Positions 4,583 to 62,706 of a stretch of DNA of 64,000 nt are shown piece by piece. The notes beneath the pieces were generated by a model, which saw only the letters and a list, made by a program, of their open reading frames with translations, did no database searches and was not told where the DNA came from. The stretch covers positions 62,001-126,000 of the forward strand of contig OZ025665.1 in NCBI GenBank assembly GCA_964019335.1, given 5' to 3'. The DNA is from Diplonema japonicum. Its lineage: Eukaryota > Protista > Euglenozoa: Diplonemea. Made by a program: the position numbers and the translations under genes. Position 1 is the stretch's first letter, and every line of letters begins with the position of its first letter.

Positions 4583-5718
4583 TCATATTTTTACAGGCAC
4601 GACATAAAGCTGTTGGAATAGTAAAAAGAGAAAGAAAAGAAAACCCCAGAGCATACCTTGTCCCAATCGTAGGCCGTGACGTATGCTGTACTATCATCGA
4701 GTCGTACCTTTTTTTTTTTTTTTTTGATTTTTTTTCTCTTTTGTTTTGTCCGACATACTCCTGTAAGCAAGCAGTCTTTTAACAGCTCATGGCTGTGTAG
4801 TTGCACCTTGCCACCGTTCGATTTTGAAGGCATCTGCCAAAGACACAGAAGCATGTCCTCTGAAACGCTGGCAAGCTGTAGGGGGTGAAAAAAAACTTTT
4901 TTTCTTCTTCTTGCACACACCAAGTTTGTGCTAGGGTTGTAGTGCATGGCGTTAATCCATCGCGAATGCGCGGCGATCTCGACAGCTACGCTGCAGTTGT
5001 GACTGTCGTAAAGCCTGATGAGACCCGAGCCGAAAGAGGCTGCAATGAAGGAAGAGAAGATGTGAATGGATGTGATGGTATCGCTGTGGATAGGTTGAAG
5101 AAATAAAAATAAGAAAGCTCCATACCCAGGGAAAGACGCTGTGGACGCCACCTCCAAGGACTCAGACCAGACTATCATCTCGCCAGAGATGTCCGCAGAA
5201 GCGATGATGAAACCCCCACCGTCCGTCTGGCCTACTGCAATGTCACTGATGCTGTCATTGTGCTTCGAGAGGGACTTCACAACAGAAGCCTGACCTGCCT
5301 CGAAATTAATCACGCTTATACTACCATTCGAGTGTCCCAAGAAGACGAGAGTAGACGCGCCCTGCTGAAGCGTAGCCACTCCCCGCGAGAGAAAAATTTC
5401 TTTCGTGTCCTCCACCACGCATGACGCCACCATTTTCTCTTTTGCCATATCCCACATTATCAAACCATTTTGGGTCACAATCAGCAGGGTCGGGACGCCC
5501 TCAATGTCCACCGCTTTCACCTGGTACACCGTGGCCTTTGTCTTCCCGTCGCCCTGCAGAGGGTGCACCACTACAGGACTATCATGTTTGCTGATATTCA
5601 CAACCACCGCATCGTTCTTGTGCACGTACGCCACCCAGCTATCCAGTGCAGTCAAGTTATTGTACAGCAAGCTGGGGGTTGTGTCACCACCCTTCAGGCT
5701 GATCGACGTGTATGACAT
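4583..5718 (-). CDS. WD40-repeat protein (WDR54-like), ~316 aa; introns 5084-5125, 4876-4920, 4708-4758, 4610-4656
   Basis: WD repeats (H..SISDI..IASADISGEMIVW; AHSRWINAM..LASVSEDMLLCLW) and an N-terminal LYNNL. Removing four GT-AG introns deletes the poly-K and F-rich inserts and closes the frame (ends KLYVVPVKI*). Confidence 0.85.
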
Positions 5719-5772: not shown

Positions 5773-5845
5773 CTCCCCCTGTTGGGTTCGAACCAACGAC
5801 CTGCAGGTTAACAGCCTGACGCGCTACCGACTGCGCCAAGGGGGA
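5773..5845 (-). tRNA. tRNA-Asn (GTT)
   Basis: Cloverleaf: TCCCCCT/AGGGGGA acceptor stem, D arm GCGC-AGTCGGTA-GCGC, anticodon loop CT-GTT-AA (one mismatch at the top of the stem), GTTGG-TTCGAAC-CCAAC T arm; followed by TTTTT. Confidence 0.95.
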
Positions 5846-58957: not shown

Positions 58958-59161
58958 TTCTTTAAACTTCTTTTTCGCGTCTCACCCACCCCCTCCGTGA
59001 CAGCGGGGGTCCTGTTCTAAATGATACTTCTGTGCGATAGTCAGAAGATAAGGGAAGGGAAAGAAAAGGATCGGGGGAGAGCAGCAAAAAAAGAAAGGTG
59101 TGTGTGTGTGTGTGGGTAATGTTAGGTCATTAGGTCAATAACAGCAATAGGGGGGGGGGGG

Positions 59162-59741
59162 GGGGGGGTCACATGGGGGTGGTAAAGTGGGTTTTTTCAA
59201 ATTCGGAAATGCAGAACACTGGAGCCACTTAAACCATGTAAAACGCCCCTTTCTCGACCAAAAAATCGATCTTTTTACTTTTGGGCACCTACAAGGCATT
59301 ATTTTGCATTTTTAAAACTGGTGACCGCGGTTTGGTACCTGGCCTGTTGTCTCCCCTGTAGTTTCTGAATTTTCTGAAAATCTTAGAATTTGACCATGGT
59401 TTGACGCCGCTACTGTTTGAACGGCAGAGTATTGTCTTACATTGTCCGATTGTGAACTTTTCTGTGTTTTGCGCAGCATTTCTGATGAATATCTATCATT
59501 TTCCCGAGGTTAGGATGGTAAGTTTGTTTTTGCAAATATCAGGTACCAAACAGTGGTCACTGTTTTTCAAAAATACAGATAAAGCATTAACAAGTGCCCA
59601 GAAATGCTCTAATCCGGCGAATTTTGATTTTTTGGTTAATTTGGAGGGTATTGGGCGGTTTTTTTCATCTTAGGGGAAAAGATTTAAAAATACTTTTTTT
59701 TTCACGTTTAACCACGTTTTTTAGGACCATGTGACCCCCCC
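59162..59741. mobile_element. MITE with GGGGGGGTCACATGG terminal inverted repeats (~580 bp)
   Basis: G-run-TCACATGG at 59150-59176 versus CCATGTGA-C7 at 59727-59741; non-coding interior. The left boundary inside the G19 run is ambiguous. Confidence 0.75.
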
Positions 59742-59920
59742 TAGGGCTATGCTGGCATGGAAACGCGTTTCCATGCATTCTTTGAAAAAAAGGGAAACGG
59801 ATACGGAAACGGAAACGGAAACGTTTCCTTGTGTTTCCTTAAGAAGGAAGCCGTTTCCATAAGAATTTTGAAAAGTATGGAAACGGAAACGTTTCCACGT
59901 TTCCTGCCAGCATAGCCCTG
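59742..59920. mobile_element. hAT-like MITE (179 bp) with TAGGGCTATGCTGGCA / TGCCAGCATAGCCCTG TIRs and GGAAAC(GG) subterminal repeats
   Basis: 15-bp perfect inverted match; YAGGG termini typical of hAT; about ten GGAAAC/GTTTCC motifs. Confidence 0.8.
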
Positions 59921-60556
59921 GGGGGGGGGGGGGGGGGCGTATTTGCGAGAGAATATACATTTCTTTTCCTTCTTTCCTTTATTAAGACCTTTGTTGCTGT
60001 ATGTTTCTTCCCTTTTTCTCCTCTGAAGTAATTAACAGGACCACGCAACCACAGGAAAGAAAAAGAGGAAGCAGTCGAAATCCTAAGAGTGTTGTCAAGA
60101 AATATTTAAAAGAACTTGGCTTCGAGAATCCATTCAAAGAATAGCAATAGTATATAAAGAATGAATGGAATGGGAAATGAAGAAGAAGGAGACCTTTCTA
60201 TTCTCTATTTGTATTTGGTTTCACGGTTTCATAGGTAAATAAAAGTTCACTAGTTCCTTAAGAACCTCAAATTCTTCTCCTCTTCTTTCTTCCATCCACT
60301 CATTCAAAAGAGAAGAAGAAGATAACAAAAAAAAAAAAGCTGCCCCTTCTCAACGAGAGGGGTCTACCGGATATTGCTGCATTATTTGTGCCCCCTTTTT
60401 TTATAAGGGGCTTATTAGATATGGAAAGAAGGGATAAGGAAGAGACCTGGAACAAATGGCCCTTACAATACGGGGGAGAAAAAAAAATCCAACCATCCCC
60501 GCTCTATCCGTTCAGACTCCAGTGGTCATGTAAGGAGTCAATGGGGAGAAAGGCAC

Positions 60557-62468
60557 TCACCCACCTTCTGAGAGAGCCACCTGCGAGCCAGTCGGGCTCA
60601 CGGGGCCCAGTTTTGCTTTGCAGATTGGACAGGACCGCCCATAACTCTCGAAGTACTCCAACGCACAAGCCTCATGAAAGACGTGTGAACAAACAGGGAG
60701 CACAGCCATAACTTCGCCCGTTTCGTATTTATCCAGACATATAACACACGACGCAGTACAATCTGCTTCCTCTGCAACCCGGCTCTGAAAATGTATGCAC
60801 GTGAGTTGTCTTTCATACCTTCAGAGCAGCCATCTCTTTGCTGCTTGCACCAGGTTTGACAACAACATCTTCCATGGAGAGACGCAACAGGGCTGAGTAG
60901 TGTTCCGGCCTGTTGGTGTGTGATTATAAAAAAGTACCCCGTGAGGGATTCGAACCCTCAACCTTTGGATTAGAAGTCCAACGCGCTATCCGTTGCGCCA
61001 ACGGGGCTGATGACCTCTTGGCCGGGGGTTGGTGAATATATATTTATGTGACAGAGAGCGAAATACACACTAATAAAGACAAAGGAGAGAAAGACAACAA
61101 GGTGTTCGCAACAGAACCAACGATGGTCCAGTGTGGGAGACGAGATTGCGGTATGCCATCATCGAATGGGTGAAAATTTGTGTCCCAAAGAAAAAAATAA
61201 AAATCGTCATACCCAAACTGTCCATTGAGGGAGGCAACATAGAGCTTCAAAGTAGGAATGTCCATTGCAGATATGGCACGTTCCCACTGTTCTAAGCGGG
61301 CAGCACGCCTCTTTTCTCGGATGCGGCGGCGGTCGGAAGGGTCTCGCCGCCTGGCGGTTTGTGTAGGAGCTGAGGCGGATGACGCTGTGGTGCGTGCAGA
61401 AGAGTAGCGTGGGATAACCCTTGCAGCACTGCCCCGCCGCTGAGTTGCGGACGGCCGTCGTTTCTCTTTCGGTTGTTGGGCTTCCTTCACAACCCGGGAG
61501 ACAACGACAAGCGGTGCTGGGGTGGGGGGAGGGGATTCAACCATTTCAACTACCTGCTCAACACCTACACGCATCCGCTCTCGTTCCAGTTCTCTCTCTT
61601 CGGCTTTTCGTCTGTCACCGACGACCCGTGCAGACGCAATAGCTCCACACATCACGATGATAGCGTGTGTTTCTTCCTCACTGGGGAGCCTCGACAGGCC
61701 GGCGTTTGTGGATGCAAGCACAAGAAGAGCAGCGGCTGCTGCAGCTGTCTCTGTATGCAGTCTTGCACGGAGGCCTCGGATGAGAATCACGAGGGATTCC
61801 TCTTGTACCTTGGTGACGCGTGCAGCAACGATCGTTTCTGTTGCCGTGTACGCCAGTGCTGCCCCGCAAAGAGTAAGCATCGTTACCTGAATCGATCCAG
61901 GTTCGATTCTTGACGGGCCCGCGTTCTTCTTCCTCTGCGGTGTCACGGTGGCGATGGTGTTGTTGCTGCTTTTCTCCATTTTCTTTTGGACGACCCCACT
62001 TGCCTCTCGCCAGTCTTTCAGTAGCTCTGACACCCCGTATGGGTTTCGTCTCACTTCTTGTATATTCTTCAGTGCTTCGGAAAGGCATAGAAGGTCAGAC
62101 TCGAGTATGGGTTTCCTGTTCGGCGTGCACACGGGGCGCCCACTGTCGCCAGAAGGCGAGTGGACTGTTCGTTGCTGAATTTCCAAGAGAGGGATCATTC
62201 TACCCAGTCTTTTATTTGCCTTTGCTGTTAGGGAACACAATGAGTTGCTTTTTTGCCATATGCAAGGAAGGGGCGGTGCCACTGGGCTGGCCTTACTTGG
62301 GTGTGGCTCAATGCCTCTACGCACAGTGGCGCTTGCCACCACTCTGCCTCCATATGGTATAGGTGCGGCTCCCCGTCTTACTGGCTGAGCGCTCACTACG
62401 CCTCGCCTCCCGTGGTACCTGCCGTTCCCTTCGTTGCTGTGCACCAGCGGGAGCAAGGAAGTCCTCAT
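60557..62468 (-). CDS. RING-H2 E3 ubiquitin ligase, ~524 aa; exons 61213-62468, 60819-60909, 60557-60784
   Basis: Splicing GG|GTATGA..AACAG|G and AAG|GTATGA..TTCAG gives NGQFGPEHYSALLRLSMED..GASSKEMAAL..CVICLDKYETGEVMAVLPVCSHVFHEACALEYFESYGRSCPICK, a C3H2C3 RING with the typical upstream YxxLLxL motif. The RING is not visible in the ORF track. Confidence 0.85.
60935..61007 (-). tRNA. tRNA-Arg (TCT), intronic
   Basis: GCCCCGT/ACGGGGT acceptor stem, TTGGA-CT-TCT-AA-TCCAA anticodon arm, GAGGG-TTCGAAT-CCCTC T arm; followed by CTTTTTT. Confidence 0.95.
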
Positions 62469-62706
62469 CCCCCCCACGTTATTTTTGACTGCCCCACTTT
62501 TTTTCTTTTTTGCTTTTTGCGCCACCAACCTGTATTTTAAAAAGCTTCACTTTGTTGACGCTGGGGGTTGTAACTGAAAAGAAGAAGAAGAAGAAGAAAA
62601 GGAAAACAAAAAAAAAAAAAAAAAGAAAAAAAAAAAACAAAAAAAAAACTTTGGACCTGATTTCTTTTTTCCTTATTCTTTTTCTGTCCCCCTTTTTTTT
62701 TTGAGG

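Follow-up and report, generated by a model that had tools for sequence, protein, structure and literature searches.

A tRNA-Arg gene inside a spliced intron of a RING-H2 gene, and the docking of tRNA genes before acceptors in Diplonema japonicum

In a 64,000-nt stretch of the diplonemid Diplonema japonicum (assembly GCA_964019335.1, contig OZ025665.1, positions 62,001 to 126,000; hereafter the window, with position 1 as its first letter), a tRNA-Arg(UCU) gene lies within the first intron of a gene for a predicted RING-H2 E3 ubiquitin ligase, in the sense orientation and with 24 nt between its end and the last base of the intron. The intron is removed exactly from the host mRNA. Across the genome, about one in five sampled tRNA genes is docked in the same way before a consensus acceptor. 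We propose that tRNA and host form a nested pair, in which an autonomous RNA polymerase III (Pol III) gene would occupy RNA that the RNA polymerase II (Pol II) transcript discards, as one case of this genome-wide docking, with a constraint on where a sense tRNA can be tolerated as its likeliest cause. We hold this reading with moderate confidence.

A tRNA gene in a spliced intron

Four public sequencing runs were placed on positions 60300-62700; two of them, X9 and X1, are of RNA type, and X7 behaves like genomic DNA. An X9 contig of 2270 nt with 0 mismatches omits exactly the 303-nt intron 1 and the 34-nt intron 2, and an X1 contig of 1081 nt, from a relative that is ~2-3% diverged, omits the same two introns at the predicted borders. 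The intron 1 joint (60908>61212) is found in contigs of both runs, and the X7 contigs are all unspliced. An earlier note, made from the DNA letters alone, had predicted a GTATGA..CAG intron of this length that interrupts a Gly codon, and had named transcripts across the junction as the check. Both the prediction and the check hold, since the contigs of the two RNA-type datasets omit precisely 60910-61212 and join the GG at the end of exon 1 to the G at the start of exon 2. With its consensus borders and exact removal, intron 1 is a real U2-type GT-AG spliceosomal intron. No contig in the RNA-type runs covers its 5' part at 61029-61190. Published introns of D. japonicum have the consensus G/GTATG..CAG, a median length of 41 nt and an A-rich 3' region free of pyrimidine tracts (PMC12621601). 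The lengths of 33-51 nt that the earlier note gave for 29 of the other 30 introns agree with this median. The 46 short introns that we predicted in the genome likewise have the acceptor consensus CACAG/G and are A-rich before the acceptor.

The tRNA gene is intact and on the host strand, as the earlier note had claimed. Rfam model RF00005 matches it over its full length (model positions 1-71) with 72.9 bits against a gathering threshold of 29, and ARAGORN assigns it as Arg(tct), the anticodon occupying tRNA positions 34-36. The tRNA had been placed 25 nt from the 3' splice site; the gap between its end and the final base of the intron is 24 nt. A single C separates the tRNA from a run of six T (T6), the presumed Pol III terminator, and the G-free spacer ATAATCACACACCAA, within which the branch site probably lies as judged from its letters, leads to the acceptor CAG. 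The T6 had been described as the main pyrimidine run before the acceptor. Within the final 100 nt of the intron no other T-run occurs, but a longer tract stands further upstream at 61102-61070. That tract (minus strand, 32 nt of pyrimidines followed by TAG) resembles an acceptor 63 nt upstream of the tRNA and inside intron 1; its TAG is unused in the RNA contigs. A role of the T6 as the acceptor's own pyrimidine tract is doubtful, because the introns of this species do without such tracts and T-runs are generally not followed by acceptors. No special RNA fold of intron 1 was detected (z = 0.72).

The tRNA-Arg(UCU) sequence occurs in three identical copies in the genome, and a metagenome scan with its 3' half returned only unrelated tRNAs, identical at no more than 54 of 73 positions. 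Another tRNA-Arg(UCU) copy (L002; G000:C83:372997-373069) is present in unprocessed form in an X9 contig of 1587 nt and an X1 contig of 343 nt; the X9 contig includes ~1.4 kb of upstream flank and has a depth close to that of the host mRNA.

tRNA genes before acceptors across the genome

The assembly comprises 62.5 Mb in 132 contigs, and an Rfam search scored 63 tRNA genes. ARAGORN, applied to the surroundings of these genes and of 20 further loci, yielded 105 distinct tRNA genes, which are a sample of the genome's tRNAs that leans to high-scoring isotypes. All but one (104/105) have a T-run of at least four T that begins no more than 4 nt from the 3' end. A tRNA-SeC(TCA) called by ARAGORN (L072; G000:C83:415726-415800) is likewise followed by a T-run.

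We counted a tRNA gene as docked when the first downstream AG lay at 15-45 nt and formed part of ACAG, and this was the case for 23 of the 105 (22%). The median distance from a docked tRNA to its acceptor is 24 nt, the same as at intron 1. The identical event followed 78 of 1621 other runs of five to nine T (4.8%), which makes the enrichment ~5-fold (Fisher p = 7e-9); it followed 3.2% of random positions and was found on the antisense side of none of the 105 tRNAs. A histogram of ACAG positions holds 19 in the 15-29 nt bin against ~6.5 per bin elsewhere, and the other strand is without a peak. T-runs in themselves do not draw acceptors. The ACAG excess after T-runs generally is no more than ~1.5-fold (4-5% against 3.2% at random positions) and their length has no effect, so we rejected the T-run as a general acceptor signal.

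The spacers of docked tRNAs contain 6% G, as compared with 15% in the AG-free tails of ordinary introns. Since the downstream flanks are unique sequences, the docked loci can be regarded as independent of one another. Spacers are only slightly more alike within anticodon families than between them (p = 0.036; for the 30 nt upstream of the tRNA, p = 0.0005), and copying of spacer and acceptor along with the tRNA is therefore not supported. An all-against-all comparison of the flanks of 80 tRNA loci found upstream matches that are retrotransposon tails and downstream flanks that are unique. The 205-nt 5' part of intron 1 is single-copy in the genome. With no other copy of that part and unique downstream flanks, an introner or another intron-generating mobile element was rejected. 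Target-site duplications at tRNA loci were not apparent either, with a mean score of 12.25 against 12.5 in shuffled pairings, and a CACCAAC repeat at the intron 1 locus that might suggest one is attributed to chance.

The genes that follow the tRNAs show a directional bias as well. Of the long open reading frames (ORFs) downstream of tRNAs, 43 run in the direction of the tRNA and 13 against it (p = 7e-5), and a long ORF begins just downstream of 15 of 80 tRNAs as opposed to 1 of 80 on the antisense side. The antisense side served as the control for this last count because random positions land inside ORFs and are invalid for the purpose.

Docked acceptors are of two types. Those of cis introns include the RING-H2 host, an Arf gene and a kinase gene. 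The Arf-family gene (L018:1996-2651, plus strand) is split at Pfam profile positions 96-127 and 126-169 by an intron that holds three tRNAs: an antisense tRNA-Ile(UAU) 22 nt from the donor, a sense tRNA-Phe, and a sense tRNA-Val whose end lies 21 nt before CACAG. In the kinase gene (L044), a Pkinase exon that starts at profile position 108 of 263 lies 24 nt past a tRNA-Ile. A larger share of the docked acceptors precede complete genes, whose start codons follow at 28-55 nt; among these are genes for HSP70 (profile position 1 at residue 6), PCMT (profile positions 3-206 of 210) and a LisH-CTLH protein. Gene starts in Euglenozoa are made by spliced-leader (SL) trans-splicing, and the upstream context of acceptors is shared by cis and trans splicing in D. 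papillatum, a relative (supplement of PMC10161547). For these two reasons the acceptors at gene starts are probably SL acceptors. The earlier note had put forward that tRNAs in this genome are lodged in introns; docking near acceptors is borne out genome-wide, but most of it appears to be before such probable SL acceptors. Elsewhere in the window, 27 nt separate the end of a tRNA-Asn(GUU) gene (5773-5845, minus strand) from a CCCAG, and 54 nt separate it from the ATG that opens a 375-aa WD40-type ORF (4594-5718, minus strand), a probable gene start where the docking geometry is as at intron 1.

Expression of the tRNA and possible causes of docking

Several lines of evidence bear on how the tRNA is made. 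Within the gene are an A box, TGGCGCAACGGA, and a canonical B box, GGTTCGAATCC. At 52 tRNA loci with unrelated flanks and no transposon tails, the upstream region shows a C/G bias at -18..-15 (0.33-0.75 bit) and an A/T bias at -25..-22, and upstream of the tRNA-Arg the CCGG and the A/T-rich ATAAATATATATT stand at places that match this signature; the region may thus function as a promoter. Within anticodon families, about 30 nt upstream of the tRNA are conserved (p = 0.0005), which likewise speaks for an autonomous Pol III gene. At least 25 of 80 tRNAs are preceded, at a distance of 5-15 nt, by the 3' end of a retrotransposon with a poly(A) tail. Slime mould and yeast elements that target Pol III complexes give the same pattern upstream of tRNA genes. 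In D. japonicum, such retrotransposon families, with copies that are 97-100% identical and tails in the orientation of the tRNA, were seen at L004, L020, L024, L025, L027, L031, L032, L043, L045, L056 and L057, among others. At least 12 pairs of tRNAs lie on opposite strands, and T-runs are also present at convergent and antisense tRNAs.

Host-dependent intronic small RNAs, of the small nucleolar RNA (snoRNA) or mirtron type, lack a promoter and terminator of their own and always lie on the host's sense strand. The tRNA-Arg gene carries A and B boxes, the upstream signature and the T6, and in the genome at large an antisense tRNA occupies the Arf intron and the opposite-strand pairs occur. The earlier note had offered two routes of expression, release from the excised intron or Pol III transcription inside a Pol II unit. 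On these sequence features the evidence favours the latter, and release from the intron is the less favoured of the two.

We propose the following course of events. The tRNA-Arg would be an autonomous Pol III unit, with its internal A and B boxes, its upstream A/T and CCGG signature and its T6 terminator. Pol II reads through the tRNA gene, since the mRNA holds exons from both sides of it, and the spliceosome would then throw intron 1 away. RNase P and RNase Z might additionally free some tRNA from the excised intron, and the model does not require this. Under co-directional polycistronic transcription, a sense tRNA, being a substrate of RNase P and RNase Z that carries a T-run, might be tolerated only in RNA that is discarded; placed as near to the branch-site and acceptor module as is allowed, it would be transcribed last. 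About one in five tRNA genes follows this arrangement, with a T-run and a G-poor spacer of ~18 nt leading to a (C)ACAG/G acceptor on the sense strand only, and the 24-nt gap at intron 1 is its modal spacing.

Several points weigh against this reading. A constraint alone leaves the sharpness of the 24-nt peak, the restriction to the sense strand and the G-poor spacers without an obvious explanation. The unique 5' part of intron 1, at 205 nt, exceeds what would be expected of a tRNA unit dropped into a 41-nt intron. The polymerase that makes tRNA-Arg is deduced from sequence features, and the SL acceptors at other loci are assigned by motif and position. Finally, the L002 copy stands unprocessed in a 1.6-kb RNA-type contig, so that long Pol II transcripts may on occasion retain a sense tRNA.

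Of the competing explanations, the one that survives best assigns the tRNA and its T-run a function in defining the acceptor, and docking would be selected for the help it gives to cis- and trans-splicing of the downstream exon. The T-run would take the place of a pyrimidine tract; alternatively, the tRNA fold or factors bound to it would serve as a splicing enhancer. This explanation would fit the sense specificity and the sharp spacing of docking and the low G content of the spacers, and it would cover the probable SL acceptors. SL acceptors in the kinetoplastid sister group depend on pyrimidine tracts, and this reliance lends the explanation some weight, as does the position-dependent enhancement of splicing by tRNA look-alikes in human introns (PMC7722341). 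[quoted passage not shown] We therefore consider acceptor definition unlikely.

Alternatively, the tRNA could derive mainly from the Pol II transcript, cut by RNase P and RNase Z from the excised intron or outron in the manner of snoRNAs or mirtrons. The shared strand at intron 1, the 43 to 13 sense bias genome-wide and the placement in discarded RNA only would all be accommodated, and a Caenorhabditis elegans study raises the same possibility for that species (PMC4999229). Against it stand the T-runs at virtually all tRNAs, including antisense and convergent ones that no single direction of Pol II transcription could serve, the conserved upstream signature and the Pol III-style targeting by transposons; the 24-nt spacing, moreover, would be left without a reason. 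This origin is decidedly improbable in our view, and we rank it, like acceptor definition, lower than constraint.

Two further ideas fare much worse. The earlier note had suggested that RNase P and RNase Z might cut the pre-mRNA in competition with splicing and thereby decide whether the E3 retains its RING domain, and reading through the intron would indeed add 56 codons up to a stop at 61044 and give a product without the RING; this is very improbable and finds no support, as the two RNA-type datasets show the fully spliced form only and leave 61029-61190 without contigs (which may miss rare forms), a cleaved pre-mRNA would be without a poly(A) tail, and docking is also seen at genes unrelated to this one and at gene starts, which offer no choice of domain. 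Coincidence, such that the tRNA merely happens to be intronic, has a precedent in C. elegans, where introns hold 44% of the tRNA genes, a share not above chance, and 56% are in the sense orientation (PMC4999229). It is equally improbable here, as consensus acceptors are enriched five-fold at a fixed distance from the tRNAs and the antisense side has none.

Intron-nested tRNA genes are already known, and it is the docking at an acceptor that looks new. The intronic tRNAs of Caenorhabditis and other animals are, like the one described here, complete Pol III genes within Pol II introns whose hosts are spliced normally, and no fixed distance to the acceptor is reported in the available parts of these sources (PMC4999229, PMC3342880). 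D. japonicum differs from Caenorhabditis in its strong sense bias, its modal 24-nt gap and the occurrence of docking before probable SL acceptors as well. In the trypanosomatids, the sister group, transcription likewise proceeds in polycistronic Pol II units and every tRNA gene has a T-run terminator, but the tRNA genes of the TriTryps are clustered, often at convergent strand-switch regions, and tied to Pol II termination (PMC2695483). In D. japonicum, by contrast, a spliced mRNA spans the tRNA gene and Pol II reads through. Human nuclear intronic mitochondrial-derived tRNAs (nimtRNAs) offer another parallel, in that an intronic tRNA cloverleaf can affect host splicing depending on its position; these numt-derived look-alikes are most effective at 50-200 nt from the 5' splice site and work in both orientations (PMC7722341), whereas the D. 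japonicum tRNAs are genuine nuclear genes at the 3' end of the intron and in the sense orientation only.

Intronic box C/D snoRNAs have a preferred distance to the 3' splice site, possess no promoter or terminator of their own and rely on host splicing. A small RNA gene at a characteristic distance upstream of an acceptor is thus common to both systems, and the tRNA-Arg gene differs in what appear to be its own promoter and terminator. Placement of tRNA genes in introns or at acceptors does not seem to be mentioned in the diplonemid genome and intron papers PMC10161547 (with its supplements), PMC12621601 and PMC13598402.

The arrangement offers a concrete starting point for studying how Pol III genes exist alongside polycistronic Pol II transcription and trans-splicing. 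It is also of use for annotation, since tRNAs mark acceptors and the growth of long introns takes place upstream of tRNAs, by way of targeted retrotransposons. A bolder idea is that Pol III tRNA genes in diplonemids are functionally coupled to 3' splice sites, and this could take three forms: the tRNA and T-run module might help to define cis and SL acceptors; tRNAs might be harvested from discarded outron and intron RNA, linking polycistronic Pol II transcription to the supply of tRNA; or the site just before the branch site might act as a kinetic shield against cutting of the pre-mRNA by RNase P and RNase Z. We regard coupling in any of these versions as possible, if on balance rather unlikely; were it true, each would be a new way in which Pol II, Pol III and RNA processing influence one another.

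The host gene and its features

The features of the locus are collected in Table 1.

Table 1. Coordinates of the host gene, the nested tRNA gene and associated features in the window
Feature	Position	Strand	Basis or remark
Host gene, tRNA gene and both introns		all minus	three-exon host gene
SL trans-splice acceptor AG of the host mRNA (..aaaatacag/g)	62530..62531	-	end of X9 contig
Exon 1	61213..62529	-	ORF list, sequence, RNA contig
5' untranslated region (UTR) of exon 1	62469-62529	-	start codon ATG of the coding sequence (CDS) at 62466-62468
Intron 1, 303 nt, GTATGA..CAG, hosts the tRNA gene	60910..61212	-	X9 and X1 contigs
Promoter-like upstream region (putative)	61022..61047	-	A/T-rich ATAAATATATATT at 61035-61047; CCGG at -18..-15 (61022-61025)
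tRNA-Arg(UCU) gene	60935-61007	-	ARAGORN, Rfam RF00005 (lower end at 60934/60935)
A box TGGCGCAACGGA	~60989-61000	-	read from sequence
B box GGTTCGAATCC, canonical	60946-60956	-	read from sequence
T6 run, presumed Pol III terminator	60928..60933	-	one C between tRNA end and T6
G-free spacer ATAATCACACACCAA and acceptor CAG	60910..60927	-	sequence; fits species consensus CACAG/G
Exon 2, 91 nt, linker (PEHYSALLRLSMEDVVVKPGASSKEMAALK)	60819..60909	-	RNA contigs
Intron 2, 34 nt, GTATGA..TTTTCAG	60785..60818	-	skipped in X9 and X1 contigs
Exon 3, coding part	60557..60784	-	stop codon TGA at 60557-60559
RING-H2 domain, wholly in exon 3	~60617-60751	-	PF13639 zf-RING_2
3' UTR, at least to 59944	59944..60556	-	X9 contig extends 356 nt past 60300

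The host mRNA carries a spliced leader. The X9 contig stops at 62530 and continues with 20 loose letters, the reverse complement of which, TACAGTTTCTGTACTTTATT, equals the conserved 3' part of kinetoplastid spliced leaders. SL sequence is thus joined at an AG acceptor upstream of the host CDS, and because the loose 20 nt equal the SL 3' end, we conclude that the host mRNA is trans-spliced at the AG of 62531-62530.

The product of exon 1 has no Pfam domain. The earlier note had assigned a RING-H2 to the two exons downstream of intron 1; the domain is complete, but it lies entirely in exon 3 and exon 2 encodes a linker. PF13639 matches at E 5.3e-13, with 49.5 bits against a cut-off of 27.3, over profile positions 2-44 of 44. 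By its C3H2C3 zinc-binding motif the host product is classified as a RING-H2 E3 ubiquitin ligase, with ligase activity as a prediction. Its sole homologue in the protein database is P0001, a protein of 552 aa from an 825-kb ENA contig. The host exons were searched against it one at a time: exon 1 aligns with residues 15-442 (..SLNGQF) at 27% identity over 96% of its length, exon 2 with residues 444-471 at 61% and exon 3 with residues 475-533 at 39%. P0001 is colinear exon by exon, which shows that the spliced product is conserved over the two junctions.

Just past the end of the host mRNA contig lies a foldback element (59143-59927). Its terminal inverted repeats of 28 nt (59735-59762 and 59900-59927) are 89% complementary; the element lies between C7 and G19 runs and sits within a larger inverted pair at 59143-59176 and 59727-59748.

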